Virus record (IMG/VR): IMGVR_UViG_3300023179_004149
Coordinates: 1-64,000 of that record
Strand: one strand, 5' to 3'
DNA length: 64,000 nucleotides
The number at the start of each line of letters is the position of its first letter. Position 1 is the first letter of the stretch. This document shows positions 9,516 through 32,441 of the stretch, in pieces. The translations under genes were made by a program, and so were the position numbers. The notes under the pieces are model-generated. The model saw only the letters and a list, made by a program, of their open reading frames with translations, was not told where the DNA came from and ran no database searches.

Positions 9516-9597
9516 TGGGCGCAAGAGGACTCGAACCTCTGAACTCAAAAGAGGGGTGGGTTACAGCCACCTGCAATTGCCGCTATGCGATACACCC
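9516..9597 (-). tRNA. tRNA-Tyr(GTA)
   Basis: GGTGG-CTGTAAC-CCACC; long variable arm. Confidence 0.92.
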
Positions 9598-9602
9598 AAA
9601 TT

Positions 9603-9640
9603 AAAAAACCCCAGATACTTTCGTAACCTGGGGTTTCTAT
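9603..9640 (-). terminator. Attenuator terminator 1
   Basis: AAACCCCAG...CTGGGGTTTTTT directly before the first tRNA of cluster 1. Confidence 0.85.
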
Positions 9641-9653
9641 CTTTTTTACTCTT

Positions 9654-9773
9654 TTATGCTCCTGTATCTGATACATTAACATTTCGAGTATAGAAACCCC
9701 TTCCGTGTTCATACGCTGGGTATGACGGTTCATAACTTGATGCTGACCAGGATGTTAATACTGAGTTTCTCAT
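9654..9773 (-). CDS. Leader peptide 1 (39 aa, MRNSVLTSWSASSYEPSYPAYEHGRGFYTRNVNVSDTGA)
   Basis: Manual translation; S/W/Y/E/P-rich core; contains an 11-nt perfect complement of the terminator left arm. Confidence 0.8.
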   Translation of the reverse strand: MRNSVLTSWSASSYEPSYPAYEHGRGFYTRNVNVSDTGA

Positions 9774-9806
9774 TTTATTTTCTTTTTATTTTTTTTTATA
9801 AAAATC

Positions 9807-9855
9807 AGGATGTTTTTGTATTTCGTACCAGAAATTAAATTGCTGAACACATCCT
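9807..9855 (-). ncRNA. CAGCAA-box RNA, short form
   Basis: AGGATGT-GTTCAGCAA...ACATCCT terminal stem. Confidence 0.5.
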
Positions 9856-9873
9856 CTGTTTATATAATTATTG

Positions 9874-9905
9874 CAAAAGTAAGCAAAGTTCTCGAAACTA
9901 CCAAA
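9874..9905 (-). promoter_or_regulatory. Bacteroidota-type primary-sigma promoter (representative of at least 14 copies)
   Basis: TTTG (-33), 20 nt spacer, TACTTTTG (-7, consensus TAnnTTTG). Confidence 0.8.
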
Positions 9906-10059
9906 TTTTTTTGAACTTTTTTTATTTGGGTTATTTTGTTTCGTTTTCCTCTCAATTACAGTACAAAAGTAAGAAAGGTTTCTAAATAAAACAAGCGCTT
10001 TTTGAAATATTTTTTATTTTTATTCGTTTTCGACAATATTTATCAATAAATACATTACT

Positions 10060-10305
10060 ATGAAAAAGTTTTTTATGGATCTTATATCAGGTTCAAGTGA
10101 AACATCAAGCAAAAGGTTTGCTTCTTTATTTACTTTATTTAACATTATAGTTCTGGCTTATCTTGCTGCTTGGAAAAATAACTGGGTTACACCTGAACAT
10201 ATGTTTGATGGTCTTTGTCTTATCACTGGTGGTGGTTTAGGACTTACAGTTATCGAAAAAGTATTTTCTAAAAAGAATAAAGAAGAGGGAACGTCAGAAC
10301 AGTAA
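10060..10305 (+). CDS. Small two-TM membrane protein (possible holin)
   Basis: Two hydrophobic helices and a charged C-terminus. Confidence 0.5.
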   Translation: MKKFFMDLISGSSETSSKRFASLFTLFNIIVLAYLAAWKNNWVTPEHMFDGLCLITGGGLGLTVIEKVFSKKNKEEGTSEQ

Positions 10306-10976
10306 TGAAAGTTTTTAATTCCATACTAACAATAGCATTAAACGAAGGATTAATTCGCACAGAAGAAATTAATAATACCATTAAGATATTACGTAATTCT
10401 TATCCAGACGCTCAAATAACGAGGTATATGGAGAGCATTGAAATTAGTCTTTTAACTGATAATTTAGATCGTTCAAAAATTGAATCATTTTTGAAGTTGA
10501 TAAACAATTTGGGTTGGTATCCGTCAGGTTATTACGCTAAGTCAGAATGGCAAAAGTTCACAAGAGATGGTTTTATTCGAGACATACAAAATTTTAGAAG
10601 GGTAGATCTGATAATTGAAAAGAAATATGACCGAGAATTCAAGAAACAAGATATATTTTACCATGCCACTAAATTGAAGTACGCTCATAAAATAGAAAAG
10701 ATAGGATTAACACCAAGAGCAAAATCCAAAAAAGGCTATCATCCTGAAAGAATTTACCTCGCTATATCATACGATGCGGCATACGATATTCTTGGTTTGT
10801 TATACGATCATGATGAATATTCGGACCCGAATTGGGTTATTTATGAGATTGATGTAAGTAATATACCTAACTTTAAAACAATGGTCGACCCCAACTTTGA
10901 TGGGGGTGTTTATACAACACAAAACATACCACCATCAGCGATAAAACGATTTAAAATTTTAGATCTTTCAAAATAA
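10305..10976 (+). CDS. ADP-ribosyltransferase-fold protein (Tpt1/KptA-like C-terminal domain)
   Basis: FYHAT...IEKIGLTPR, RIYLA, IYEID, YTTQNIPP. Confidence 0.55.
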   Translation: MKVFNSILTIALNEGLIRTEEINNTIKILRNSYPDAQITRYMESIEISLLTDNLDRSKIESFLKLINNLGWYPSGYYAKSEWQKFTRDGFIRDIQNFRRVDLIIEKKYDREFKKQDIFYHATKLKYAHKIEKIGLTPRAKSKKGYHPERIYLAISYDAAYDILGLLYDHDEYSDPNWVIYEIDVSNIPNFKTMVDPNFDGGVYTTQNIPPSAIKRFKILDLSK

Positions 10977-11311
10977 TTAATCGAATATATCAAGTTTTTG
11001 ACCCTCGTAAGTGGTTATGCTGGATCCATCAACAAAGTATATCTTGGTTTCACTCCGATCCCTGGTAGCTGGCCACAAAATCTATTCGGTGCTGGTATTG
11101 ATTCGAGGTAAATATTTCTGTTCAGTGGAAATCTCATGTACAGTTTTTTTTATTAGGTTTTTAATTTTTGGTCTAGTTCTCAAATCATCATAATAATCCT
11201 GATAAGTCTTAGCTTCCGTGGATTTACCTTCATCTTTACAGTTTTTTATTAACTGTATAAGCCGATCTAAGTTAGACATAATATTGTATTCGTGTATGTT
11301 GTGTTCACAAC

Positions 11312-11593
11312 TCATTTCCAACTTATTTTATATTCCAGTGTGCTAAACTCAGCATCTGGTCTACATGGTTTGTGTTCAACCTTAAACCCATCTTCTATAA
11401 GAATACTCTTAACCTGATCGTTGACGGATGAGGTTGCTACCATTATGTAGAAGTGACCATCGTTTGCGGCTTGTTCTATTTTCTTATAAACCTTATTGGC
11501 GTGTGATTTCAACACTGTCTCGGCTATGTGTTTAGCTTCTTCTGCGTTCATATTATAAATATTAGTATTTTGAAAATTTGATAGTATCACCAA
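11312..11593 (-). CDS. Hypothetical protein
   Basis: ORF in a packed minus-strand run. Confidence 0.55.
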   Translation of the reverse strand: MVILSNFQNTNIYNMNAEEAKHIAETVLKSHANKVYKKIEQAANDGHFYIMVATSSVNDQVKSILIEDGFKVEHKPCRPDAEFSTLEYKISWK

Positions 11594-11834
11594 TTTCTTT
11601 GTTTTTGGTTGGTGATGTAATAGTTACATCACAATCCGTGTGGAAATGATATAACGGGTACGGTTCAGAAACCGAAGTTTGAGGTACTAACCATACACTA
11701 TCCACCACGCACCTAAAATAAGGTGCTTTTGTGTCATTGCATGATGTAAAAGAGAGCATCACCCACAGAGCAGCGGCCAGTACGAATAAACCGAATAAAT
11801 ACGGCCATAATCTTAAAATGGTTTTTAGTTTCAC
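11562..11834 (-). CDS. Hypothetical membrane/lipoprotein
   Basis: N-terminal hydrophobic stretch followed by FTSC. Confidence 0.55.
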   Translation of the reverse strand: MKLKTILRLWPYLFGLFVLAAALWVMLSFTSCNDTKAPYFRCVVDSVWLVPQTSVSEPYPLYHFHTDCDVTITSPTKNKEIGDTIKFSKY

Positions 11835-11838
11835 GGTC

Positions 11839-12315: not shown

Positions 12316-12318
12316 ATC

Positions 12319-12720: not shown

Positions 12721-12803
12721 TTCTTTTTGTTTAGGATACAAAAGTAAGAATTTTTTTTGACATAACCAAATAAAAATGGGATAACTTTCGTTATCCCATT
12801 GCG

Positions 12804-12877
12804 TTGTCCTGGTGAGAGTTGAACTCACTACCTTCACCTTATCAGGGTGACAATCTAAACCGTTGATATACAGGACA
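12804..12877 (-). tRNA. tRNA-Ile(GAT)
   Basis: TCACC-CTGATAA-GGTGA. Confidence 0.9.
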
Positions 12878-13000
12878 AAATAAGGTCATTGTTACAACAT
12901 CTCTCACCCACTTTCTTGGCAGGGTATCCATCATGCGTTCCGTTAACCGATGTATAATTTTATAGCCCTTGACGGAACAAGCTGGGCAACCAATTTTTTG

Positions 13001-13072
13001 GGGTCAAGCACGGTATCGATCCGAGTTCTCCTGATTCACAGTCAGGCACATCACCTTAATGCTTCAAGACCC
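13001..13072 (-). tRNA. tRNA-His(GTG)
   Basis: CCTGA-CTGTGAA-TCAGG; G-1:C73 possible; A54-type T loop. Confidence 0.85.
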
Positions 13073-13080
13073 ATGTGTTG

Positions 13081-13153
13081 TAGCCTTATGGTGAATCGAA
13101 CACCAGTTGTCGTCTTGTAAGGACGATGCACTAAACCACTGTGCTATAAGGCT
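13081..13153 (-). tRNA. tRNA-Val(TAC)
   Basis: TCGTC-CTTACAA-GACGA. Confidence 0.9.
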
Positions 13154-13160
13154 ATTAATG

Positions 13161-13232
13161 TTGTGAGTACGAGGTTCGAACTCGTATGACGAATGTATAA
13201 GATTCGCAGCCTAACCATTAGCTGAACTCACA
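13161..13232 (-). tRNA. tRNA-Ile(TAT)
   Basis: CGAAT-CTTATAC-ATTCG; TGTGAGT/ACTCACA acceptor. Confidence 0.82.
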
Positions 13233-13315
13233 ATAATTCTGTCTTTCCAGATGTCAAATATACTATTGACTTGTCAATACTTTAATATTGACGCTTACCG
13301 CATATTAGGGTTAGG

Positions 13316-13387
13316 TGCGCCTTGCTGGTATCGATCCAGCCCCCGCAGCTTAAAAGGCTGCTGCCTACACCTGTTTGCCAAAAGCGC
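13316..13387 (-). tRNA. tRNA-Lys(TTT)
   Basis: GCAGC-CTTTTAA-GCTGC. Confidence 0.88.
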
Positions 13388-13390
13388 ATT

Positions 13391-13840
13391 TTATTGTTCC
13401 AACCATTTATACCAACCTTGTTGTTTAGCTGTTCGCCTATGGTGACAGTTAGCACATCTGGTTTCGCATTTTTTTAATTCTTTCTCTATGGTACCCCAAA
13501 CAGTGGAATATACCATATTTGAAATCACACCCTTTTTATCAACACCATCCATATGATCCGACTGGAGAACTATGGGGTCAGTTTCACCACAAACAACACA
13601 AGGATGATCTAAATAATGCTGATACAATTTTCTCCTATTCTCTTCAATTTCAGCTTTCCTTCGTTTTCTAATCACCGCTTTATGGTGGTTGGTATTTTCT
13701 GAATAATATTGTTTTGATCGTTCATTACTACATTTTCTACAAATATTATTATATCCGTCTTTTTTACCCTTATTTTTATTAAATTCGGATATTTTTTTCT
13801 CGTCTTTGCACTTAGTGCATATTTTCTTATTTTCTTCCAT
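13391..13840 (-). mobile_element. HNH endonuclease gene inserted in the tRNA cluster
   Basis: CTKC...CRKC Zn motif; CVVCGE...LQSDH...CANCHHRRT HNH core. Confidence 0.85.
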
Positions 13841-13881
13841 AATAATAAATATAAGGAAAAAACTTTTAAAATAAACACTGG

Positions 13882-13919
13882 TTAAAAGTGTGGTGCTCTA
13901 CCGATTAAGCTACGAGACC
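13882..13919 (-). pseudogene. 5' half of a tRNA-Lys(TTT), cut just after the anticodon loop
   Basis: GGTCTCG-TA-GCTTAATCGGTAGAGC-A-CCACA-CTTTTAA, then unrelated sequence leading into the HNH gene. Confidence 0.8.
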
Positions 13920-13926
13920 ATTAAAG

Positions 13927-13999
13927 TAGCTCCGAAGGGACTTGAACCCCCAACCCGCTGAGTAAGAATCAGCTGCTCTGCCAATTAAGCTACGAAGCT
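13927..13999 (-). tRNA. tRNA-Lys(CTT)
   Basis: GCTGA-TTCTTAC-TCAGC. Confidence 0.88.
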
Positions 14000-14003
14000 A
14001 TGT

Positions 14004-14041
14004 AAAACTAAAAATGCTCCAGGGTTCACCTGGAGCATTTG
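14004..14041 (-). terminator. Attenuator terminator 2
   Basis: AAATGCTCCAGG/CCTGGAGCATTT 12-bp stem plus T-tract directly before tRNA-Lys(CTT). Confidence 0.85.
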
Positions 14042-14064
14042 CTAAATTTTATTCTTAAACCCTG

Positions 14065-14145
14065 TTAAGAATTAGACAAATAGTCACCAGGCATAGTTTT
14101 AGCTATGACGTGTTTAATATGCTTTATAATGACTAACTGTTTCAT
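14065..14145 (-). CDS. Leader peptide 2 (26 aa, MKQLVIIKHIKHVIAKTMPGDYLSNS)
   Basis: Manual translation; V/I/K/H core; 3' part complementary to the terminator left arm. Confidence 0.8.
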   Translation of the reverse strand: MKQLVIIKHIKHVIAKTMPGDYLSNS

Positions 14146-14247
14146 CTTATTGATTGTTTATGTTGTTTTAAAATTGTTCTCTTTAATAATTATTACAAAA
14201 GTACGAAAAGTTCTTGATTTTGCAAAGTTTTTTTCAAATATTTTTTT

Positions 14248-14907
14248 TTAATATCCGTAATATATCATTACGTTCTTTTTCCAGTTAAATGTCTTATAAA
14301 TGTTTATAAGCCCAAATATACCGTACTCATACTTCCAACTGGTTGTAATGGTATCACCATGTTCTAAACTAAACGGTGGTAATCCACACCACTCCATATT
14401 CATTGACTTAACATGATTTATCATTTCAATAATAGCTGTCTGTTCTTCGCCAGTTAATTTGGTTCCATCAAAAGTATATTTTGTAAACGGCTCCGAACTC
14501 CAATGGTATTCACTCTCAATTGACTTAAGAAATTCAGACGATCTTTCTTTTTCTCGAGAAAACGGTGCCACCATCACTTGATAGTACTTCTTTATTCTTT
14601 CCTGATAGGTCGAAATCACATAAGCCAGAAACTCTTTAGTCACAATATAAAAATCATATTCATCGTAACGAGCCATTAACTCCTTATTCTTAAAAAATCT
14701 TTTTAATGATTTTTTTGGTGGTTCAAACCCATCGTATTTACCAAATTCATACAACTCAGTACCATACTCATATACGCCTTTATACCAATCATCGTCAGAA
14801 ACATGTTCCTTATTAGGATAATGGTCTTTAAGTTGTTCAAAAGACATTGACTTGATTTTATTGTACTCTCGTTTAGGCATCGAGCCTATGTATGTTCTAT
14901 AACCCAT
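14248..14907 (-). CDS. Hypothetical protein
   Basis: 219 aa ORF. Confidence 0.7.
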   Translation of the reverse strand: MGYRTYIGSMPKREYNKIKSMSFEQLKDHYPNKEHVSDDDWYKGVYEYGTELYEFGKYDGFEPPKKSLKRFFKNKELMARYDEYDFYIVTKEFLAYVISTYQERIKKYYQVMVAPFSREKERSSEFLKSIESEYHWSSEPFTKYTFDGTKLTGEEQTAIIEMINHVKSMNMEWCGLPPFSLEHGDTITTSWKYEYGIFGLINIYKTFNWKKNVMIYYGY

Positions 14908-14954
14908 TAAATATTACAGCTTTAAACCGACTCACTTTTTTTGTAAAAATATTT

Positions 14955-15871: not shown

Positions 15872-16062
15872 CTTTCTCGTTAAAATACTGTTTTAATTCG
15901 TCAATGGTACAGTCCAATCGATATGATATCATATCTTTGGACATGGATAAAAGATAATTTTTAACATCTGTTAAAAAAGATATCATCTCTTCTTTCCACT
16001 CTTCAGTACCGACAATATGTTTTGTCTTCATCTTTATAGTTTTATATCTATAAATATCAGAG

Positions 16063-16135
16063 TGATTCCAGTGGGGATCGAACCCACACCTAATTGATTT
16101 AGAGTCAACTATACTGCCGATTATACTATGGAACC
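16063..16135 (-). tRNA. Amber suppressor tRNA (CTA)
   Basis: GTTGA-CTCTAAA-TCAAT anticodon arm; complete cloverleaf, short variable loop, A73. Confidence 0.85.
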
Positions 16136-16260
16136 GTTAAAACGCGCACTATGGGTTAAATGCGCACTCACCCAAAAATGATATATAGTTCACGGACATA
16201 ATTCCGCTGGGTTTTCACCGTTAGAACTGGATATCAACCATTCTTATTGTGACGTTTTAG

Positions 16261-17971: not shown

Positions 17972-18385
17972 TGGTGGAGGTAGGGGCATCGAAGCCCCGT
18001 GTCAAGTAATAGCAAATTAACTTTCATTCACATGTTTATCAACTTTTTCTAAAGGTGAAAAATAAATGGAACTCTATTTGTCGGGGTAACATACCGTGGT
18101 ATGTTGCGCTGTCGTCAATACCGAATCCATTGTCCTGGGTATTGCAACATTTAAACCCCCTCACGCTTTGCAGATTTTAGCGACTGTTGTCGATAACCCC
18201 GAAGGATTAAGCGAATGCAGGTTCTGCAACCTCAACAGGCTGACCGTTGAGAACGATGTCTCCGTCAGCGGTAATATAGCTTGCGCCATTTAACTGTTCA
18301 CATAGGTTATTTAAGTGTTTCCAATGCTAACACTACATGCATCAAATTAAAGAACTAATTTACCGATCAAAACCTGGTTACCCCC
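17972..18385 (-). ncRNA. ssrA: tmRNA with a 26-aa tag (GASYITADGDIVLNGQPVEVAEPAFA*, 18287-18207)
   Basis: 5' GGGGGTAACCAGGTTTTGAT; 3' GACACGGGGCTTCGATGCCCCTACCTCCACCA with G3:U70; UUAAAU just before the GGC resume codon. Confidence 0.9.
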
Positions 18386-18469
18386 AAATTAAAATTATTT
18401 GTTAATTTCTTAGTCACCATCACTGGTGTGCAGTAGCCACTACGTGCAAGTGAATTAACTTCGGCTACT

Positions 18470-18554
18470 TACCTCAGATGGGAGTCGAACCCACACGACC
18501 CTTACGGGTCACAGGTTTTTAAGACCTGCATGTCTACCATTCCATCACCGAGGC
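18470..18554 (-). tRNA. tRNA-Leu(TAA)
   Basis: CAGGT-CTTAAAA-ACCTG; long variable arm. Confidence 0.9.
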
Positions 18555-18614
18555 AGGTGTTTTATAAATAGAGTACAAAAGTAGTAAAACTTTTTGAATC
18601 CTCCAAATGTTTTT

Positions 18615-19202
18615 TTAAGAAAACTTCAAACTTTCTTTTAGGTGGTTTGCAAACTCTCTATTATACAAAGGCGCATTTTCTTTTTTAACATAGTATGTTT
18701 TAAAGTTAACCACACCCTCAGCACATTCTTCACCAGGGATACACAATTGATATTTTATAGCATACAATATCGGTTCGTGTGTATCATATTCCATAACCCT
18801 ATAATTAAGGTTATTTGACTTTATGAGATCATCAACGATTTCTCGTGTTGCCAAAAAATAATAATCCGAATATATTTTATTGTCAACGAACTCAACGCCT
18901 TTTAAAATAATGTCGCCATTATTTGCGATGTGTTCTGTATGATCCATAAAGATCTTTACAGCTCGTATCTTACCGTTAGCGTCACGTTTAACAGAATACT
19001 GCTTATAAGGCTCAATATCGACGTTAAAACCTGGATTGATCTCTTTTACAGCTGACTTAATTTCATCCAAATTTTGGGCTATTATGTACTCGCTATTAAG
19101 TTTATCGGTCTCGGTTATAAAATTCGCCGTTTTGTCCGTAACGCTGGCTTTTATATCACCATCAAGGTCAATATAAAAATCGTTTAACTCATTAATTTCC
19201 AT
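18615..19202 (-). CDS. Hypothetical protein
   Basis: 195 aa ORF. Confidence 0.65.
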   Translation of the reverse strand: MEINELNDFYIDLDGDIKASVTDKTANFITETDKLNSEYIIAQNLDEIKSAVKEINPGFNVDIEPYKQYSVKRDANGKIRAVKIFMDHTEHIANNGDIILKGVEFVDNKIYSDYYFLATREIVDDLIKSNNLNYRVMEYDTHEPILYAIKYQLCIPGEECAEGVVNFKTYYVKKENAPLYNREFANHLKESLKFS

Positions 19203-19413
19203 TATTCAAATCTTTAAATGAGGCCCAGGTTATCCACCCTGTACCGTTACCAAAGTTATGTGTTCTGTTATTATAGAACAGAACTTTACACATTTCGGTC
19301 TTTTCATCAACCTCAAGCACTTTACAACTTGTATTCAATTTTGATGAATTATATTCTTTAGGTGTTTCTGGTTTCATTTTACAAAAATAATAAAAGAACT
19401 TCAAAAAAACAAG

Positions 19414-19484
19414 TACTCCTATTCCGTAACGATCAGAATTCTCATGAGTCAAAGTCATGCGCATCACCTTAATGCTTTAGGAGT
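19414..19484 (-). tRNA. tRNA-Gln(TTG)
   Basis: ACTCCTA/TAGGAGT acceptor; CATGA-CTTTGAC-TCATG; A54-type T loop. Confidence 0.85.
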
Positions 19485-19490
19485 ATATAG

Positions 19491-19561
19491 TAGTGCCTAA
19501 TGGATTCGAACCATTGATACAACTTTCAGAGAGTTGAGTGTTACCGCTACACTAAAGCACT
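19491..19561 (-). tRNA. tRNA-Gln(CTG)
   Basis: CAACT-CTCTGAA-AGTTG. Confidence 0.88.
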
Positions 19562-19567
19562 ATTTTG

Positions 19568-19624
19568 TAGTCCCCGAAGGATTCGAACCCTCACCAAGTA
19601 TGCTTACCGTTACACCAGAGAACC
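19568..19624 (-). ncRNA. Anticodon-armless tRNA-like RNA (57 nt)
   Basis: Acceptor, D arm and T arm intact; D and T arms joined by only ACTTGGT. Confidence 0.65.
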
Positions 19625-19724
19625 ATAGCCACGTAAATCGGATTCCATACCGATATCTTATACCCTCCGTAGGTAGTGTGCAATTTACTCACGTCTGAGT
19701 ATGGATCTTACACTTTTACGCTTG

Positions 19725-19798
19725 TACCCCTAACGGGATTCGAACCCGTAAACTTCTGGGTCTAAACCAGACGACTTTCCCATTTTGCCCACAGGGGT
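19725..19798 (-). tRNA. tRNA with TAG anticodon (Leu) and short variable loop
   Basis: TCTGG-TTTAGAC-CCAGA; 5-nt variable region. Confidence 0.78.
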
Positions 19799-19805
19799 GT
19801 GTTTG

Positions 19806-19887
19806 TGATCGAAGAGAGACTCGAACTCTCAAACCCGAAGGTATGGGTTTCTTAGACCCACGTGTATACCAATTCCACCATTCGACC
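19806..19887 (-). tRNA. tRNA-Leu(AAG)
   Basis: TGGGT-CTAAGAA-ACCCA; long variable arm. Confidence 0.85.
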
Positions 19888-19893
19888 TTATTG

Positions 19894-19967
19894 TGACTTC
19901 TTTTGGATTCGAACCAAAAATCTGAACTTTCGTAGAGTCCTATGCTTATCCGTTGCACCAAGAAGCC
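19894..19967 (-). tRNA. tRNA-Arg(ACG)
   Basis: GGACT-CTACGAA-AGTTC. Confidence 0.88.
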
Positions 19968-20009
19968 AAAAAAAGAAAAAACCCCCAGTCGCTTTGCGTC
20001 CAGGGGCTA
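19968..20009 (-). terminator. Attenuator terminator 3
   Basis: GCCCCTGG...CTGGGGGT plus a long T-tract abutting tRNA-Arg. Confidence 0.85.
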
Positions 20010-20036
20010 AATATTTTTGCTTATCTCTTTTAATTG

Positions 20037-20138
20037 TTAATAACAATCATCATCTTCATAACAAGCAATACTCGCCCCTTCTCTTAGTTGTAAGAGTTGT
20101 AACTGGCGTTGACGTAATATGTTAGTTATGTTTTTCAT
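20037..20138 (-). CDS. Leader peptide 3 (33 aa, MKNITNILRQRQLQLLQLREGASIACYEDDDCY)
   Basis: Manual translation; 12 consecutive L/R/Q codons; AGGGGCGAGTATT pairs with the terminator left arm. Confidence 0.82.
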   Translation of the reverse strand: MKNITNILRQRQLQLLQLREGASIACYEDDDCY

Positions 20139-20172
20139 TTTATATAAATAGTTTAGTTTTTTACAAAAGTTA

Positions 20173-20273
20173 CAATTCATCGGATTATTTTAGAAAATCC
20201 CCGTGGGGACTTTTGGAGTTGAACCAAATTTACAAATTTAACCAAAGTAGTTGCTGGAAATAATCCCGAATTG
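20173..20273 (-). ncRNA. CAGCAA-box RNA with an internal T-loop-like hairpin
   Basis: CAATTCGGGATTATT-TCCAGCAA...TTGG-TTCAACT-CCAA...AATAATCCGATGAATTG. Confidence 0.6.
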
Positions 20274-20340
20274 TTTTACAAAAGTAAGAAGAGTTTTTGA
20301 ATTAAACAAGTCTTTTTAAAAGTTTTTTCAGATATTTTTT

Positions 20341-22275: not shown

Positions 22276-23871
22276 ATGAATATTTCAGATTTTCTAATAA
22301 AAGACTCATATGATTATGTCTTACAATCGGATTTAACCACGGGTGTTGTTTACCGAATTGGTGGTGATGTTCCAGTAAACCCAACATTTGCGTCTGGTTT
22401 AACGGTTAATGAAAATTTTACATATAAAGATGGTTCGGAACAAAATGGTTATGTATTAACTTCTGACGCTGACGGTAAAGCTTCCTGGAAATCAGTTAGT
22501 GGTGCGGTTAGTGGTAGTAACGGTACATCTGGTAGCTCTGGTGAAAGTGGTTCATCTGGTAGCTCAGGATCTTCTGGTAGTAATGGTGAAAGTGGTTCAT
22601 CTGGTTCATCGGGGTCATCAGGGTCATCAGGTACTTCAGGAACAAGTGGTATAAATGGTATTTCGGGTGGGGCGATTTATTACTTCAATCAATCCGTAAC
22701 CCAAACCCCATATAATGAATTTTCAACATTATCAACCACCGCATCTCAACAAACATCTACAGTCACTATTGCAAAGGGTGCAACATCAACAATTAATTCA
22801 TATTTAACCCCATCAAATATACCAAACGTATCGGTTATTCCGCCAGGTATTTGGTCATTTTATCTGCACACATATAAAGAAGACAGTAACTCATCATTTG
22901 AAATTTTTTGTCGGGTTTATTCAAAAGCTATAGATGGAACTGAAACTTTATTATTTGAAACAGATCCCGCACCAGTAACGAGTATTTCACCAAATCCATC
23001 AATGGTATTAACCGATGTGTATCAGCCAGGGTATTCTATCAATACAACTGATAGAATCATAGTTAAAGTAAGTGCAACCAATACATCTAATCAATCACAC
23101 TCAATTACATTTGTAACAGAAGGTACTGTTCATTATTCTTATGGACAAACAACATTAGGTATTTTTGGTAACTCTGGTTCATCTGGTTCATCTGGTTCAT
23201 CGGGATCATCTGGTTCATCTGGTTCATCGGGATTATCGGGATCATCTGGTTCATCTGGTTCATCGGGATTATCGGGTTCATCTGGTTCATCGGGATTATC
23301 GGGTTCATCTGGTTCATCGGGATTATCGGGATCATCTGGTTCATCTGGTTCATCGGGATTATCGGGATTATCGGGATCATCTGGTTCATCGGGATTATCG
23401 GGATCATCTGGTTCATCGGGATTATCGGGATCATCTGGTTCATCGGGATTATCGGGATCATCTGGCTTAAGTGGTACATCTGGTAGCTCAGGCACATCAC
23501 CAGATATAACGAACGCTAAAATAGGTACTATAACATTTATAGCTGATGGAAGTGGTGGTGTTATTACCACTGGTAGTAAAGGGTATATAACAATACCATA
23601 TAATGGAACACTTTTATCTTGGTATTTATTTGCTGACCAGTCTGGTTCTATATCAATAGATATTAAAAAATGCAATTATAGTACGTTTCCAACCACTACA
23701 AGTATTGTAGCTGGAAATTATCCAAATTTAACGAATCAACAAAAAAACACGGATTCAACATTAACTGGATGGGATACATCATTAAACAGTGGGGATATTC
23801 TTGAATTTGTTATAAATTCAACAATTAGTGTTAGCCACACAACATTACAATTAACAATACAAAAAGCATAA
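22276..23871 (+). CDS. Ser/Gly-repeat virion fibre-like protein
   Basis: Two (SGS/SGL)n tracts separating beta-rich domains. Confidence 0.7.
   Translation: MNISDFLIKDSYDYVLQSDLTTGVVYRIGGDVPVNPTFASGLTVNENFTYKDGSEQNGYVLTSDADGKASWKSVSGAVSGSNGTSGSSGESGSSGSSGSSGSNGESGSSGSSGSSGSSGTSGTSGINGISGGAIYYFNQSVTQTPYNEFSTLSTTASQQTSTVTIAKGATSTINSYLTPSNIPNVSVIPPGIWSFYLHTYKEDSNSSFEIFCRVYSKAIDGTETLLFETDPAPVTSISPNPSMVLTDVYQPGYSINTTDRIIVKVSATNTSNQSHSITFVTEGTVHYSYGQTTLGIFGNSGSSGSSGSSGSSGSSGSSGLSGSSGSSGSSGLSGSSGSSGLSGSSGSSGLSGSSGSSGSSGLSGLSGSSGSSGLSGSSGSSGLSGSSGSSGLSGSSGLSGTSGSSGTSPDITNAKIGTITFIADGSGGVITTGSKGYITIPYNGTLLSWYLFADQSGSISIDIKKCNYSTFPTTTSIVAGNYPNLTNQQKNTDSTLTGWDTSLNSGDILEFVINSTISVSHTTLQLTIQKA
23173..23490 (+). 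repeat. Tandem 9-nt coding repeat (TCTGGTTCA / TCGGGATTA / TCGGGATCA)
   Basis: Directly visible; encodes SGS/SGL units. Confidence 0.9.
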
Positions 23872-23875
23872 AATT

Positions 23876-27698: not shown

Positions 27699-27773
27699 TG
27701 GAGCGGTGGGGAGAAATTGAATCTCCGTCCTTGCGTTGGAAGCGCAATATAATAGCCACTATACGACCACCGC
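27699..27773 (-). tRNA. tRNA-Gly(TCC)
   Basis: TTGCG-CTTCCAA-CGCAA; U73; encoded CCA. Confidence 0.88.
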
Positions 27774-28213
27774 ATTAAGTTCCTGGGCAACCATATGATA
27801 CAAGCGCTTGTACTGATTGGGAACGCCGTTACGTTATAACATCCTAAGATTTATAAGAGGCTTGACGGCCCACCTTATTTTTAATCCCCACGAACATACA
27901 TCCATTCACATAGATGACCCAGGATTTGAACCTGCAAAGTCCGTTTATGTATTCCTACCACACCTTCCGCTGGGACAGGGATAATTTTAAAAGTAAAGAA
28001 CTTTACCCATTCTTCATGAGCGGTTTGGCATAACCGCAGGGGAATCCTTAAACCATCCATTCATTTTTTAAAAGGGAATGGAACCTTTCAGGGTAACCCC
28101 TATCCTCACTACCATCCATTTTTAGGAAAATGGAAAACCAATATTCAACTCGATTGCGATAATACCAGGAATTGCCTCCATTATCAATATTAACCAATTC
28201 GAGTTTTTTATCT

Positions 28214-28564
28214 TTAACCCACAGAAATTTGTAAACGATAAAGCTGTGACTCATTTCTATCATTAAGAACACGTAATCTTACTACGAGTTCTTCAAGAAG
28301 ATTAATATAACTTATCATCTCCTTATTGTTATTATCAGCGTTATCTGGACGACTTTTATCAAGCAAATCAGGTTCATAACCAATTATACGATTAAGCTGA
28401 TTTTTAACAGAATAATGTAAATCATACCCGCGTTCTACTTCTTCCTGAAGTCTAGCAAGTAACCCATAAAGTGTTGGCATTTCATCTACCGCGTTTACCT
28501 TGTTACAAGGTAAGTGTGGTTCGTTCTTAGCGAATCCAGAATTTGTATGTGTTTTTGTATTCAT
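28214..28564 (-). CDS. Hypothetical protein
   Basis: 116 aa ORF. Confidence 0.55.
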   Translation of the reverse strand: MNTKTHTNSGFAKNEPHLPCNKVNAVDEMPTLYGLLARLQEEVERGYDLHYSVKNQLNRIIGYEPDLLDKSRPDNADNNNKEMISYINLLEELVVRLRVLNDRNESQLYRLQISVG

Positions 28565-28580
28565 ATTAATAAATTAATTG

Positions 28581-28651
28581 AGTAGATAATGAGAATCGAA
28601 CTCACCTCTCCGCCATGGCAAGGCGGTATAATACCGATATACTATATCTAC
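28581..28651 (-). tRNA. tRNA-Gly(GCC)
   Basis: CCGCC-TTGCCAT-GGCGG; U73. Confidence 0.85.
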
Positions 28652-28889
28652 AAATGAGGCGATTATTCGGTACGCCTCGATTCCCTATCCACCCATTTGC
28701 GGTGGCTCCAGCGGCATCTGTTTTTTTTAAACCTTTCTACTAATCGTTTGTCTATACGACCAGGTTCATTCAGACACGGTAGTGTCAACTCTGACGAGAA
28801 CGCCATGTGCAGCGTTAATAATTGATTGATTTTTCATTTTGCTCAACCAAGAAAACACGGTGACTTTTAGTGAGTTTCCCCTCTCATTG

Positions 28890-29010
28890 TTGGGCACGAG
28901 GGAATTGAACCCCCACCTCTCGCTTATGATGCAAATTGTCGTTAAATGTGCTGAATTAAATCCCTACGGATTGTCCGATGTTTAACGTGCTACCATTACA
29001 CTAATGCCCA
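28890..29010 (-). ncRNA. tRNA-like RNA with a large insertion carrying a CAGCA box
   Basis: TGGGCAT/GTGCCCA acceptor, D arm and T arm intact; insertion with AATCC-GTAG-GGATT hairpin then TTCAGCA; residual CAT loop. Confidence 0.7.
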
Positions 29011-29021
29011 ATATTTTTTCG

Positions 29022-29093
29022 AGGACACACTCAGAACCGACCTGAGAACTCATGCTTACAAGGCAAGTATTTTTCCAGCTAAACTATGCGTCC
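29022..29093 (-). tRNA. tRNA-Thr(TGT), atypical T loop
   Basis: CTTGC-CTTGTAA-GCATG; CTCAG-GTCGGTT-CTGAG. Confidence 0.7.
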
Positions 29094-29235
29094 AATTCAA
29101 CTTTTAAATTATCCCCAGAGTTGCAACTGTGCTGGAATACGATCCAGAGGTTTAGTGGCTGGTAACGTAATATACCTTAACCAGACTTTCCTATCTTCGA
29201 TCCATGATGGTCGACCATCAGAGGGCTTTTGTTAG

Positions 29236-29309
29236 TTGCGAAAGGAGGATTCGAACCTCCGACCTCACAGGTTATGAGCCTGGCGAGCTGGCCTCTGCTC
29301 TATTTCGCA
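29236..29309 (-). tRNA. tRNA-Met(CAT), initiator-like
   Basis: CCAGG-CTCATAA-CCTG; fMet-like D arm. Confidence 0.85.
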
Positions 29310-29338
29310 ATGTTTACCTTTAGGAACAAAAAGTTCCA

Positions 29339-29414
29339 TGGTTGCGGGTAATGGATTCGAACCATTGATCTCCTGGTTATGAGCCAGACGGGATGACCAC
29401 TTCCCTAACCCGCA
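29339..29414 (-). tRNA. tRNA-Met(CAT), initiator-like, second copy
   Basis: TCTGG-CTCATAA-CCAGG; encoded CCA. Confidence 0.87.
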
Positions 29415-29514
29415 ATGTATATCTTTTAACAAAAACTTTTTTGTATCAGTAAAGCTCATCGCTTTAATGTTAAAAATTAAGTTTACTGTTTGCATATATA
29501 ATATGCATCCGCTT

Positions 29515-29599
29515 TGGCGGTCTCGATGGGATTCGAACCCATGATCTTCGCCGTGACGCGTTACAGGGCGACAGGGACGACCAACTCCCCTACAAGACC
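29515..29599 (-). tRNA. tRNA-Asp-like gene with a 7-nt insertion in the anticodon loop
   Basis: TCGCC-CTGTAACGCGTCAC-GGCGA; G73; encoded CCA. Confidence 0.75.
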
Positions 29600-29737
29600 A
29601 TTTTAGTTAATACATAGAACTCTTGTTGGTATTTCTGTTATTTAACCAACTTACCCCAAGCTAACAGTTGCTATTGAGTTCCGCCAGAGGCTACGGCATA
29701 TGTATTAACCGTGAGTAGGGTACCAAGTTACTCACTT

Positions 29738-29813
29738 TGGTAGCGCTGGATGGATTCAAACCATCGGCCTTCCCTTTAGAAGAGGGACGCTCTTTTCACT
29801 GAGCTACAGCGCC
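29738..29813 (-). tRNA. tRNA-Arg(TCT)
   Basis: TCCCT-CTTCTAA-AGGGA; encoded CCA. Confidence 0.9.
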
Positions 29814-30045
29814 ATATGGTTATTTAATTCTAACCCTTTCAACCGATTCAATCTCAGCATCTCCTTTAATGAGTGCTTCGAGTGTACCTTTTCTGTAGGA
29901 TAAAGAATTGTTATTCATTATCTGGTAAGAATCGCAGATGATTGTATCTCCGTTCATCAATGTGATTTTGTATTTCATATCGTTTTTGTTTTTTACAAAG
30001 ATAAATCAAGTTTTTGAAACCACCAAATTTTTGTTTAAAAGTTTC

Positions 30046-30151
30046 AGGATGTTTTTTGTTTTTTGTTTTTATTTCAGACGGGGCTCGAACCCGTGACCCA
30101 AGGCTCTAACCAACTGAGCTACCAAAATGGATTAATTGCGGAACACATCCT
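30046..30151 (-). ncRNA. CAGCAA-box RNA variant (CCGCAA) enclosing tRNA D and T arms with no anticodon arm
   Basis: AGGATGT-GTTCCGCAA...GCTCAGTTGGTTAGAGC-CTTGGGTC-ACGGG-TTCGAGC-CCCGT...ACATCCT. Confidence 0.7.
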
Positions 30152-30167
30152 CCAAACTTTTAAATTG

Positions 30168-30238
30168 CGGTCTATCTCGGTTACGATCCGAGCACTTCTG
30201 TTAGACAGACAGATATGATACCAATTCACCAATAGACC
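30168..30238 (-). tRNA. tRNA-Asp(GTC)
   Basis: TCTGT-CTGTCTA-ACAGA; G73. Confidence 0.85.
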
Positions 30239-30253
30239 AAATACTTTAATAAG

Positions 30254-30378
30254 TCCCGACAAGAGGACTCGAACCTCTACCTTTTTCGTTTAAAGAAATT
30301 GTTTTTAGATAATGACTTGCTGTAACCATCCACTCTGGATGACTCTGTTTTTTAATGCTACCATTACACCATGTCGGA
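30254..30378 (-). ncRNA. tRNA-like RNA with a large insertion carrying a CAGCAA box
   Basis: TCCGACA/TGTCGGG acceptor, D arm and T arm intact; insertion CATCCA-GAG-TGGATG-GTTACAGCAA. Confidence 0.72.
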
Positions 30379-30479
30379 ATTTTTAAAATGAAAAACGAGT
30401 AATTGACTCTATGCCTCAAACGTCAATGTTCCGACCATTGTACCGTGTTCACCCATGAGTGGGTCGTTTTTCAAATTAG

Positions 30480-30550
30480 CGGGGCTGCCTGGGAACGATC
30501 CAAGTTCTGCAAGTTAACAGCTTGCTGCATCACCTTAATGCTTCAGCCCC
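30480..30550 (-). tRNA. tRNA-Asn(GTT)
   Basis: GCAAG-CTGTTAA-CTTGC; G73. Confidence 0.87.
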
Positions 30551-30581
30551 GTATTCACCAATATGTCAAAGATCACTTAAG

Positions 30582-30654
30582 TGGTGCCCCTCGGTTTCGA
30601 TCCGACCCCCCAAGATTTTCAGTCTTGTGCTTCCACCAGGTTAGCTTGGGCACC
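30582..30654 (-). tRNA. tRNA-Phe(GAA), divergent copy
   Basis: CAAGA-CTGAAAA-TCTTG. Confidence 0.82.
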
Positions 30655-30758
30655 ATAAAACCACTCTATTTGTACTGTTATACCATCATCTAAGCCAACC
30701 TCAGTGTGGATTTCATACATAACCTCTGTTCAGTGATTCATTTCTGAATTAGAGTGGT

Positions 30759-30834
30759 TGGTGGCACGGCCACGAGTTGAACGTGGGACACCCAGATTTT
30801 CAGTCTGGTGCTCTACCAACTGAGCTACCGCGCC
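30759..30834 (-). tRNA. tRNA-Phe(GAA)
   Basis: CCAGA-CTGAAAA-TCTGG; encoded CCA. Confidence 0.92.
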
Positions 30835-30849
30835 ATTTTATTTGTATTA

Positions 30850-30930
30850 CAATTCATCGGAATGGGTCTTTTAGCTTGAATCATTAAGAGTGAATTGCTT
30901 GTAGAGTTTGCTGTAATCATTCCCGAATTG
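30850..30930 (-). ncRNA. CAGCAA-box RNA
   Basis: CAATTCGGGAATG-ATTACAGCAA...CATTCCGATGAATTG; same terminal stem as 20173-20273. Confidence 0.6.
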
Positions 30931-31237
30931 TTTTACAAAAGTAAGAAGAGTTTTTCAATTTTCCAAATCTTTTTTGAGATTTTTTTATTTGTAAACTACT
31001 CCGTTTTTTTCTTCTTGTTTAAGAGCTTCAATCTCAGATACCAGGTAATTGAATTCTGTCTCTGACATTTGTTTTTTTTCTTTGGTTGATAAGCGACTGT
31101 ATTTATACTCAATCCCTTTCCAGTTTTCTTCAAGCATCTTTAGCAAAGCTAACCAGACATGCCAATTTAGTTTTTTCATTTGTTTCAGTGTTGTGTTTGC
31201 AAAAGTAAGAATTATTTTTGAAACCACCAAATTTATT

Positions 31238-32245
31238 TTAAATGAAACCAATTTCCTCAATATCTTTAGTCAATTGCAGAACTTTAGCTTTTTGTCCGTT
31301 TCTGTATTTATTCCATGCGGTCATTACCAGTAACACAATTTCTTTTTGAGAAAGGATATTACCCTTTTTCATATCTTTGTTATGTTTATTTAACGCCAAT
31401 CTTCTTCTAAGAGCGTATATTGGTGAGTCATCTTCTAAGTTAGAACCGCACGCTAACTTATTCATGAAGTAAACAGCATCCTCAGACGATATTTCGGCCA
31501 TTACATAATGTAATGCACTAAATAAAGCTGGCGGCATAAATTTACAAATTTTATAGTTACGAACACCATAAGTAGCCGCCTCTTGAAGTTTTTCGATGTC
31601 GTTAGAAACTTGCTCAGTTCCTTCTGTATTGGTCATTACTCGTTTTGATGATCCGATGTCCGAATACCTACCCTTTTTAAAACAATTCAAAAGTTTGGTC
31701 ATACCAATTACTGCGGTATGGTTTTTAAGACCTCTTAAAGATTCGTTAGTGTTACTTGCGATAATAATCGCATCACTTAACGTTCTCGTTTTACCCTGAT
31801 CCATTTTTGTGAAATCTTTATCTTCCACACCTTGAACAATCACAGTATCAAAATATTCAGCACCGCTTTGCAAAAAAGCATAAATTCTATTACGACCATC
31901 AACAAGTTTATAATCGAGACTGAATTTAAGGGCTTCACCAGTTAAACCCCAATCACCATTATTAAATGATGTAACATAGTTTTTTATCGATGTTTCGTAT
32001 AATCTCCTATTAACAAAACCAGTTCGTAACATTAGTTTAGCCATACTACGATCAACCCTTAAAACCCCAGTACGCAATTTTTGATCGACACCAGTGGTTG
32101 GTAATCCAGATATAAAACTAACTAAAGTTAGTTTTTCATCTGGGAGTAATTCCTCGTATATTTCTTCACCGAGTTTAGGTTTTTTTGCTTTCTTGTTTTT
32201 TGCTTCGACTTCCTGAATTGTTGCTTCTGTAAAATTACTTACCAT
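31238..32245 (-). CDS. ParB/Srx-like N-terminal domain protein
   Basis: NRRL......Y......G.W...GE...F.....LVDGRNRI.A. Confidence 0.6.
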   Translation of the reverse strand: MVSNFTEATIQEVEAKNKKAKKPKLGEEIYEELLPDEKLTLVSFISGLPTTGVDQKLRTGVLRVDRSMAKLMLRTGFVNRRLYETSIKNYVTSFNNGDWGLTGEALKFSLDYKLVDGRNRIYAFLQSGAEYFDTVIVQGVEDKDFTKMDQGKTRTLSDAIIIASNTNESLRGLKNHTAVIGMTKLLNCFKKGRYSDIGSSKRVMTNTEGTEQVSNDIEKLQEAATYGVRNYKICKFMPPALFSALHYVMAEISSEDAVYFMNKLACGSNLEDDSPIYALRRRLALNKHNKDMKKGNILSQKEIVLLVMTAWNKYRNGQKAKVLQLTKDIEEIGFI

Positions 32246-32303
32246 GGGATTATTTATTTTTTAACAAAAGTAAGAATTATTTTCGAAACCACCAAATATT
32301 TTA

Positions 32304-32335
32304 ATAAAAAAACCTGAACTTTTTGGGTTCAGGCT
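32304..32335 (-). terminator. Attenuator terminator 4
   Basis: GCCTGAAC/GTTCAGGT stem plus T7. Confidence 0.8.
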
Positions 32336-32366
32336 CTTTTTGATATTGTTATTTGGTATTGACAAC

Positions 32367-32441
32367 TTAACAAAGAAAGCCCTGGCCGAAATCTCTATTT
32401 CTGCCGAAGAATCTGTCCATCGTATTTATTATCTGTTTCAT
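32367..32441 (-). CDS. Leader peptide 4 (24 aa, MKQIINTMDRFFGRNRDFGQGFLC)
   Basis: Manual translation; N/T/M/D/R/F/G core; CAGGGCTTTCTTTG pairs with the terminator left arm. Confidence 0.75.
   Translation of the reverse strand: MKQIINTMDRFFGRNRDFGQGFLC

Follow-up and report, generated by a model that had tools for sequence, protein, structure and literature searches.

The first 64,000 nucleotides of IMG/VR record IMGVR_UViG_3300023179_004149, an uncultured jumbo phage, constitute the window analyzed here, and contain four clusters of tRNA genes on the minus strand. Upstream of each cluster we identified a short ORF that follows a Bacteroidota-type promoter and ends 20-33 nt before an intrinsic terminator. 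These four ORFs had been proposed in an earlier note to be codon-matched leader peptides, and we confirmed that they exist. Promoters of the form TTTG-N17-23-TAnnTTTG are enriched in the sequence, with 19 matches against 5.85 expected, 18 of them on the minus strand. One tRNA gene, encoding tRNA-His, was missed by ARAGORN but was found by Rfam (38.3 bits), and its fold shows the anticodon GUG. One correction is that leader 4 is not directly upstream of its cluster, since a 335-aa ORF, a small ORF and three further promoters (about 1.5 kb in all) lie between its terminator and tRNA-Phe.

Table. Features of the leader regions and tRNA clusters in the 64-kb window.
Coordinates	Strand	Feature	Details
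9874..9905	-	Promoter of leader 1	Bacteroidota type, TTTG...TACTTTTG
9654..9773	-	Leader ORF 1 (39 aa)	Peptide core SWSASSYEPSYPAYE; codon core 9752-9708 codes S W Y E P (plus Ala)
9690..9701	-	Segment 2 of leader 1	Pairs with AUAGAAACCCC at the terminator's left arm; duplex -17.2 kcal/mol, p 0.017 vs shuffles
9600..9636	-	Intrinsic terminator 1	Stem 9633-9609, then a T tract; tRNA-Tyr starts 12 nt after it
8444..9597	-	tRNA cluster 1	Tyr Pro Pro Ser(TGA) Trp Ser(GCT) Glu
14196..14226	-	Promoter of leader 2	
14065..14145	-	Leader ORF 2 (26 aa)	Peptide core VIIKHIKHVIAK; codon core 14133-14098 codes V I K H
14075..14092	-	Segment 2 of leader 2	Pairs with the terminator's left arm; p 0.027
14003..14040	-	Intrinsic terminator 2	12-bp stem, then a T tract; tRNA-Lys starts 16 nt after it
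12803..13999	-	tRNA cluster 2	Lys(CTT), HNH endonuclease ORF, Lys(TTT), Ile(TAT), Val(TAC), His(GTG, 13001-13071), Ile(GAT)
20279..20310	-	Promoter upstream of leader 3	-7 box at 20286-20279; a conserved element of about 100 nt lies between it and the leader
20037..20138	-	Leader ORF 3 (33 aa from the start shared with relatives)	Peptide core LRQRQLQLLQLR; codon core 20117-20082 codes L R Q; a longer in-frame start lies at 20180
20059..20080	-	Segment 2 of leader 3	GGGGC plus UAUUGCUUGUUAU; forms a long antiterminator with the region up to and including the terminator's left arm
19970..20006	-	Intrinsic terminator 3	tRNA-Arg(ACG) starts 15 nt after it
18469..19967	-	tRNA cluster 3	Arg(ACG) Leu(AAG) Leu(TAG) Gln(CTG) Gln(TTG) ... 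Leu(TAA)
32462..32490	-	Promoter of leader 4	Variant -7 box TATATTTA, conserved in L002, L003, L067 and L141 (loci in other contigs)
32367..32441	-	Leader ORF 4 (24 aa)	Peptide core NTMDRFFGRNRDFG; codon core 32426-32385 codes N T M D R F G
32372..32383	-	Segment 2 of leader 4	GGGCUUUCUUUG; pairs with CAAAAAGAGCC at the terminator's left arm; helix conserved with compensatory changes in 7 genomes
32305..32339	-	Intrinsic terminator 4	
30936..32296	-	Stretch between terminator 4 and cluster 4	Promoters at 32296-32265, 31231-31200 and 30967-30936; 335-aa ORF (31238-32245, phrog_5931); small ORF
27699..30834	-	tRNA cluster 4	Phe Phe Asn Asp Arg(TCT) odd-tRNA Met Met Thr Gly(GCC) Gly(TCC)

To ask whether the leaders are matched to the tRNAs, we scanned every stop-free 12-codon window in all six frames of the 64 kb for the amino-acid set of each cluster. 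The top-scoring window in each case was the leader upstream of that cluster, which was the unique first rank for clusters 2, 3 and 4 (11, 12 and 12 of 12 codons) and tied first for cluster 1 (11 of 12). The match holds at the level of codons, with ATA going with Ile(TAT), AAG with Lys(CTT), TTA/CTA/CTC with Leu(TAA/TAG/AAG), and CAA/CAG with Gln(TTG/CTG). The split of Arg codons proposed in the earlier note is real: CGT and CGC precede Arg(ACG) and three AGA codons precede Arg(TCT), and the same holds in relatives, with CGC in L003 and L067 and AGA in the leader-4 family. However, some core codons have no cognate tRNA in the cluster, namely Ala in leaders 1 and 2 of the window, and GTC with Val(TAC). 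A search of the whole window for a short ORF followed by a terminator returned only 11 candidates, the four leaders among them.

Leaders of this kind are not restricted to the window. In total we found 21 leaders in about 13 phage contigs, including analogous leaders in unrelated phage contigs. Shuffling the pairing of 17 leaders with their clusters gave p <= 1e-5, and for 8 non-homologous leaders the true pairing was the unique best of 40,320 permutations. Some tRNA clusters in related contigs (Leu-Arg-Asp-Glu-Met type) have no leader. The stop-to-terminator distance was 20-33 nt in 18 of 18 leaders measured first, and 29, 31 and 39 nt in three added later, while the distance from the terminator to the first tRNA was 12-26 nt in 9 of those 18. 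The ATG and the frame are conserved in homologues, and the internal indel in the family alignment is 3 nt.

The earlier note had offered as a test that leader codons should change with tRNA content in homologous genomes, and this came out clearly positive. Between the window and the related phage contig 3300042350_004528 (loci L003 and L135), the Glu tRNA has moved from cluster 1 to cluster 4, and Glu codons are lost from leader 1' and gained in leader 4'. Likewise, Ser(TGA) has moved to cluster 2, with TCA and TCG gained in leader 2', and Cys and an Ala(UGC)-like tRNA sit in cluster 1', with TGT and five GCN codons appearing in leader 1'. Additionally, the L069 and L075 clusters start with His, and L069 also has Val, and their leaders contain H and V; the L141 cluster has Ser(TGA) and its leader has SS.

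We next examined whether the leaders could form alternative RNA structures. When each window leader was folded up to, but not including, the terminator's right arm, the left arm paired with a segment (segment 2) that starts 2-7 nt after the codon core, and masking a ribosome footprint at the stop codon removed or weakened this pairing. With no ribosome, leaders 1, 2 and 4 are predicted to fold into a 1:2 helix plus the terminator. For leader 3, however, the unconstrained minimum-energy fold keeps the antiterminator, leaving its default state unclear. The duplex between segment 2 and the left arm was stronger than in dinucleotide shuffles at p <= 0.05 in 15 of 21 leaders (Fisher combined 4e-13), compared with 5.3% of 113 terminators after ordinary ORFs. 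Two analogous leaders (L086 and L115) show no significant antiterminator. RNAalifold on 7 leader-4 homologues gave a 9-bp 2:3 helix with compensatory changes at 4 pairs when the right arm was left out; with the right arm included it gave a 13-bp terminator that uses the same columns, indicating that the two helices are mutually exclusive.

The sequence-level predictions of a trp/his/ilv-type attenuator that we could test were borne out, supporting the interpretation in the earlier note, whereas the 1:2 alternative is only a fold prediction, made for three of the four leaders. We therefore consider it likely, from sequence alone, that these elements are ribosome-mediated transcription attenuators placed in front of phage tRNA operons, sensing up to nine amino acids at once. 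In the mechanism that we infer, host RNA polymerase starts at the Bacteroidota-type promoter and transcribes the leader ORF of 24-39 codons, which a ribosome translates while the polymerase moves towards the terminator, provided that transcription and translation are coupled closely enough in Bacteroidota. If every codon of the core is decoded quickly, the ribosome would run over segment 2 and sit at the stop codon, inside the would-be antiterminator loop, allowing the terminator hairpin to form so that the tRNAs are not transcribed. If any charged tRNA species needed for the core is scarce, the ribosome would stall upstream of segment 2, which would then pair with the terminator's left arm and allow the polymerase to read into the tRNA genes. 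Because the core contains codons for all or most tRNAs of the operon, the switch would be a multivalent OR gate, and because its output is those same tRNAs, it would also be a negative-feedback loop making each tRNA block on demand. Control of cluster 4 can be at best partial, since the promoters that follow terminator 4 give transcription that bypasses the attenuator, and the close homologues of leader 4 in L002, L003 and L067 are also followed by another promoter before the tRNAs. Candidate triggers are a mismatch between phage codon demand and the host tRNA pool, tRNA loss during infection, or host anticodon nucleases; the proposal that host defence is the trigger, rather than plain feedback on the phage's own tRNA output, is an inference. 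Amino-acid starvation would also trigger the switch, although extra tRNA would not help in that case.

The same architecture could potentially operate with opposite or different logic, in which ribosome stalling favors termination, or the leaders act mainly through Rho or mRNA stability, making the element a timer that shuts the early tRNA units off rather than an on-demand inducer. The last 2-4 core codons are so close to segment 2 that a stall on them should mask it, and the default fold of leader 3 is the antiterminator. However, most core codons (8-13 per leader) lie at least 15 nt upstream of segment 2, which is the classical geometry for stall-induced antitermination, the fixed position of the stop codon inside the antiterminator loop fits fast translation leading to termination, and reducing tRNA synthesis when tRNA is short has no obvious benefit. 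We therefore regard this reading as unlikely. It also appears improbable that the short ORFs encode small functional peptides with their own terminators, the codon match reflecting only local co-adaptation or the translation of these peptides when the neighboring tRNAs are made. Some residues outside the cores are conserved (GFL in the leader-4 family and YVHM in two leader-3 homologues), but the conserved tail residues coincide with segment 2 of the RNA helix, which shows compensatory changes. Between homologues the order of residues in the core is scrambled while the composition stays inside the cluster's set, and unrelated peptides in unrelated phages show the same rule.

An untranslated RNA element that reads tRNAs directly by codon-anticodon pairing, like a multi-specifier T-box, would also present cognate triplets next to a terminator/antiterminator switch, but we consider this very doubtful. 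The cognate triplets are in one reading frame only, begin after the conserved ATG and end at a stop placed 20-33 nt before the terminator, the family's internal indel is a multiple of three, and a permissive Rfam scan of 8000-33500, which lists matches up to E = 1, contained no T-box match. Short ORFs are abundant in AT-rich DNA, with 353 ORFs of at least 20 aa in the region, yet chance or a compositional artefact is for practical purposes refuted by the permutation tests, and is further opposed by the six-frame scan, the control terminators and the reciprocal co-variation of leaders and tRNAs.

We found no description of such a switch for tRNA genes or for phages in the literature searched. 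A more tentative possibility is that several unrelated lineages of tRNA-rich (mostly jumbo) phages carry sensors of decoding capacity, in which multivalent leader peptides detect a shortage of any one of up to nine tRNA species and switch on the matching replacement tRNA operon. These could let the phage answer host tRNA depletion, including anticodon-nuclease defences or infection-induced tRNA decay, without making tRNAs constitutively. If so, this would be the first attenuation system known to control tRNA genes, and the first such sensor in a virus.

The tRNA regions of phage T5 and of Bacteroides phage crAss001 also have large tRNA arrays in the early region, interspersed with small ORFs, promoters and HNH endonucleases, and the window's phage carries next to its array an A1-like DNA transfer protein, the protein named after T5 gene A1. 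Neither T5 nor crAss001 has short ORFs that are codon-matched to the downstream tRNAs and followed by a terminator, and E. coli pheV also lacks this arrangement. T-box riboswitches likewise sense tRNA status and switch between terminator and antiterminator upstream of translation-related genes, but they bind uncharged tRNA directly and are not translated. In a pyrBI-type coupling attenuator the leader ORF runs through the terminator hairpin, whereas in all 21 leaders the ORF stops 20-39 nt before the terminator stem. The pheST attenuator of E. coli phenylalanyl-tRNA synthetase, with its pheM leader, appears to be a case of leader-peptide attenuation applied to the translation apparatus through charged tRNA-Phe, although it has a single amino acid, regulates a synthetase rather than tRNA genes, and is chromosomal. 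Other close systems are the multivalent attenuators of amino-acid operons, such as the E. coli thr leader with Thr and Ile codons and the ilvGMEDA leader with Ile, Val and Leu codons, alongside trp, his, leu and pheA, which probably share a short leader ORF (its translation being inferred in the phage) with a run of regulatory codons, an intrinsic terminator and mutually exclusive 2:3 and 3:4 helices. The phage elements do not belong to the Rfam leader families (Thr_leader, His_leader, Leu_leader, Trp_leader) by sequence, the only hit being a sub-threshold Thr_leader match on terminator 4 at 32303-32369 (30.4 bits against a gathering score of 55; E 0.043). They differ from the amino-acid operon attenuators in that the genes that would be regulated are tRNAs rather than biosynthetic enzymes, up to 7-9 amino acids would be sensed at once, and the output would feed back directly on the sensed tRNA pool. 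They are also phage-borne, use Bacteroidota-type promoters without Shine-Dalgarno sequences, and have segment 2 inside the ORF with the stop codon in the antiterminator loop.

Contig IMGVR_UViG_3300023179_004149 is 320,934 bp long, and the genome has 34.6% G+C. It encodes an A1-like DNA transfer protein, whose best GenBank matches are Flavobacterium and Maribacter phages at about 46% identity, a CCA-adding enzyme, several HNH endonucleases, and at least 32 tRNA genes, all on the minus strand. The promoters are of the Bacteroidota type, TTTG-N17-23-TAnnTTTG, with 19 matches against 5.85 expected; no shuffle out of 100 reached 19, and 18 of the 19 matches lie on the minus strand. This points to a Bacteroidota host and explains why no gene here has a Shine-Dalgarno sequence. 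DNA searches of GenBank phages with leader or tRNA regions gave only isolated tRNA matches and no cultured close relative. Large ORFs with leucine-rich repeats, collagen triple-helix repeats and a K1-lyase C-terminal domain are also present and are probably structural or host-interaction proteins.

The four short ORFs described in the earlier note are real. On the minus strand each unit reads, in order, promoter, short ATG ORF, hairpin plus T tract, and tRNAs. To avoid choosing the codon cores by eye, we scored every stop-free 12-codon window in all six frames of the 64 kb against the amino-acid set of each tRNA cluster. The best window is the leader upstream of that cluster for clusters 2, 3 and 4 (11, 12 and 12 of 12 codons, each unique), while for cluster 1 it ties for first place at 11 of 12. 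The match extends to codons: ATA with Ile(TAT) and ATT with Ile(GAT); AAG with Lys(CTT) and AAA with Lys(TTT); TTA, CTA and CTC with Leu(TAA), Leu(TAG) and Leu(AAG); CAA and CAG with Gln(TTG) and Gln(CTG); TCA and AGT with Ser(TGA) and Ser(GCT); and CGT and CGC before Arg(ACG), with AGA x3 before Arg(TCT). The His tRNA was missed by ARAGORN but is found by Rfam (38.3 bits), and its anticodon loop reads CU-GUG-AA. A window-wide search for a short ORF followed 12-45 nt later by a terminator returned only 11 candidates, the four leaders among them. The earlier note, which placed each leader upstream of a tRNA cluster, needs one correction: the terminator of leader 4 is followed by a promoter, a 335-aa ORF (phrog_5931, unknown function), a second promoter, a small ORF and a third promoter before tRNA-Phe, a stretch of about 1.5 kb.

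Codon cores of the four leaders and the tRNAs encoded downstream
Leader	Codon core	tRNAs downstream
1	SWSASSYEPSYPAYE	Tyr Pro Pro Ser Trp Ser Glu
2	VIIKHIKHVIAK	Lys Lys Ile Val His Ile
3	LRQRQLQLLQLR	Arg(ACG) Leu Leu Gln Gln Leu
4	NTMDRFFGRNRDFG	Phe Phe Asn Asp Arg(TCT) ? Met Met Thr Gly Gly

A tmRNA-like RNA lies between tRNA clusters; it scores 41.6 bits with Rfam RF00023 (gathering score 47, E 1.3e-13) over the full model length, although a tmRNA search with ARAGORN finds nothing. A suppressor-type tRNA with anticodon CTA, labeled 'Pyl' by ARAGORN, is next to tRNA-Cys. However, TAG ends only 3 of 60 long ORFs and no TAG read-through ORFs are evident in this early region; TAG recoding shows no sign in this window, although late genes elsewhere on the 321-kb contig might be recoded. 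Of three odd tRNA-like genes, one has a 14-nt anticodon loop and an encoded CCA end, and two are 57-59-nt matches to the tRNA model that appear to lack the anticodon arm. HNH or homing endonuclease genes occur in and next to the tRNA clusters, as also seen in the T5 and crAss001 arrays, and the first of those listed splits cluster 2 between the two Lys tRNAs. A near-threshold match to the wcaG RNA motif (39 bits, gathering score 42, E 3.9e-4) is found between the two Gly tRNAs. Finally, a conserved element of about 100 nt directly follows two promoters, with a closing stem (CAATTCGGGA ... TCCGATGAATTG) surrounding a variable hairpin. One copy precedes leader 3 and the other precedes tRNA-Phe, and the same element occurs twice in a related phage (locus L003 of those retrieved from IMG/VR). 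The tRNA array of this related phage also contains a sub-threshold Y RNA-like (YrlA) match (45.9 bits, gathering score 69).

Positions of features in the window and in related IMG/VR loci
Feature	Sequence	Position	Strand
A1-like DNA transfer protein	window	33241-34839	
tRNA-His	window	13001-13071	(-)
tmRNA-like RNA	window	17972-18385	(-)
Suppressor-type tRNA (CTA)	window	16062-16135	(-)
Odd tRNA-like genes	window	29515-29599, 30070-30128, 19568-19624	(-)
Conserved element of about 100 nt	window	20160-20278 and 30840-30935	(-)
Conserved element of about 100 nt	L003	about 19990-20100 and 14320-14420	
wcaG RNA motif, near-threshold match	window	28046-28142	(-)
HNH or homing endonuclease genes	window	13391-13840, 4629-5570 (-) and 7708-8382 (+)	
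335-aa ORF (phrog_5931)	window	31238-32245	(-)
Large ORFs with repeats and K1-lyase C-terminal domain	window	37926-39605, 40338-41921 (-) and 22276-23871 (+)	
Sub-threshold tRNA, anticodon UGC (Ala)	L135	13899-13967	(-)
Y RNA-like (YrlA) sub-threshold match	L003	15303-15425	(+)

We next folded each leader up to, but not including, the right arm of the terminator. In all four predicted folds the left arm pairs with a segment ("segment 2") that begins 2-7 nt after the codon core and lies inside the 3′ part of the ORF, with the stop codon falling in the loop of this antiterminator. Masking a ribosome footprint at the stop codon abolishes the pairing in leaders 2 and 4, while in leaders 1 and 3 the footprint fills the loop; masking a ribosome on early or middle core codons leaves the antiterminator intact. 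With no ribosome, leaders 1, 2 and 4 are predicted to fold into a 1:2 helix plus the terminator, whereas leader 3 keeps its unusually long antiterminator, leaving its default fold unclear. We then measured the duplex between segment 2 and the left arm against 300 dinucleotide shuffles for all 21 leaders found and observed that it is significant at p <= 0.05 in 15 of them (Fisher combined 4e-13), with segment 2 always at about nt 52-85 of the ORF. The same test on 113 terminators that follow ordinary ORFs gives 5.3% at p <= 0.05 and a median p of 0.56. The stop-to-terminator distance is 20-33 nt in 18 of the 18 leaders measured first, and three measured later come to 29, 31 and 39 nt. For seven homologues of leader 4, RNAalifold on right-arm-truncated sequences predicts a 9-bp 2:3 helix in which 4 pairs show changes on both sides, and on full sequences it predicts a 13-bp terminator that uses the same left-arm columns.

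Using the A1-like protein, a phrog_1017 protein, the CCA-adding enzyme and a leader-4 DNA pattern as anchors, we retrieved about 140 IMG/VR loci (designated by L numbers); by contrast, the 206-aa and 219-aa ORFs upstream of leaders 3 and 2 have no relatives in IMG/VR apart from the source contig itself. Homologues of leader 4 occur in L002, L003, L067, L069, L075 and L141, homologues of leader 3 in L003 and L067, and homologues of leaders 1 and 2 in L135, which comes from the same contig as L003. Between homologues the residue order in the core is scrambled, but the composition stays within the set of the cluster and follows changes in that set. In the L003/L135 phage the Glu tRNA is in cluster 4 rather than cluster 1, and E is absent from its leader 1 and present in its leader 4. 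Ser(TGA) is in cluster 2 of this phage, and TCA and TCG appear in its leader 2. Cys and a sub-threshold Ala(UGC) tRNA (25.8 bits, between the Pro and Trp tRNAs) are in its cluster 1, and its leader 1 has TGT and five GCN codons, the Ala codons being accounted for by the latter tRNA. In L069 and L075, where the homologous terminator is followed directly by tRNA-His, the clusters start with His, and L069 also has Val; their leaders contain H and V. The L141 cluster has Ser(TGA), and its leader has SS.

Non-homologous leaders in other phage contigs obey the same rule. A T/Y/Q/P/K/G core precedes Pro Pro Gln Tyr Thr Gly Gly Lys (L031, L064, L026-28), MPQPMQDQD precedes Asp Gln Gln Asp Asp Pro Asp Met (L086), VAMAPVVVVPAP, with GTT and GTC codons, precedes Pro Val(GAC) Ala (L115), and LLQQLQLLQL precedes a cluster containing only Gln and Leu tRNAs, with sigma-70-like promoters (L124-126). 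Shuffling which cluster belongs to which leader gives p <= 1e-5 for 17 leaders, and for 8 dissimilar leaders the true pairing is the single best of all 40,320 permutations. However, L086 and L115 lack a significant antiterminator, and not every array has a leader: clusters of the Leu-Arg-Asp-Glu-Met type (L024, L025, L035, L036, L042) and the dispersed tRNAs of L112, L116 and L118 have none.

Start codon, frame, codon core, stop position, terminator and competing helices together make up the anatomy of a classical leader-peptide attenuator, and the test proposed in the earlier note, that leader codons should change with tRNA content in homologous genomes, is passed. We therefore take ribosome-mediated attenuation as the mechanism with fairly high confidence, although this is inferred from sequence without experimental data. 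In this view, fast decoding carries the ribosome over segment 2 to the stop codon and the terminator forms, whereas a stall on any core codon frees segment 2, the antiterminator forms, and the tRNA operon is transcribed. Because the products are the tRNAs being sensed, the circuit is a negative-feedback loop, and because the core lists all or most of the tRNAs of the operon, it is a multivalent OR gate. Leader 4 and its closest homologues are followed by a promoter, so they add regulated transcription on top of a constitutive level. A few core codons lack a cognate tRNA in the cluster: Ala in window leaders 1 and 2, including the GCA and GCG codons that leader 1 keeps although cluster 1 has no Ala tRNA, is plausibly a relic, since the relative still has an Ala-like tRNA there, while GTC does not fit Val(TAC).

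The depletion of the tRNA pool in nature could be caused by a mismatch between phage codon demand and the host tRNA pool, by tRNA decay during infection, or by anticodon-nuclease defence, among which the sequence does not discriminate. Amino-acid starvation would also trip the switch, although extra tRNA would not help then, so tRNA shortage is the more sensible selected signal. Why phages carry tRNA arrays is debated, with codon-usage compensation, replacement of degraded host tRNAs and escape from anticodon nucleases among the proposed reasons, and the regulation of the arrays has hardly been studied. Codon-matched attenuators would mean that the phage measures decoding capacity codon by codon and makes tRNAs on demand, which supports the view that the arrays replace a failing pool. 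Each leader would be a natural reporter of the availability of a defined tRNA set, and since the elements are compact, at about 150 nt, and modular, they could serve as tRNA-availability biosensors. Leader-peptide attenuation would be extended to RNA genes, to viruses, and to hosts that lack Shine-Dalgarno sequences, with a single leader integrating up to nine amino acids.

In full-text literature searches that did not reach older subscription papers, including the 1980s T5 tRNA sequencing papers, we found no description of leader peptides or attenuators in front of phage or any other tRNA genes. The T5 tRNA region and the crAss001 tRNA array contain many small ORFs, but none is codon-matched and followed by a terminator, and the DNA upstream of E. 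coli pheV has no Phe-rich leader ORF. By sequence the elements belong to no Rfam leader family, with no family at threshold on the leaders, and no T-box match appears in the permissive Rfam scan of 8000-33500. They are not of the pyrBI type, because the ORFs end before the terminator. The mechanism appears to match that of the thr and ilvGMEDA leaders, which are multivalent, and of pheST/pheM, which regulates a translation-apparatus gene. Altogether, the observation is confirmed and the interpretation is supported as far as sequence analysis can go: this would be a known kind of regulator, classical attenuation, applied to phage tRNA arrays and present in several uncultured phage lineages.
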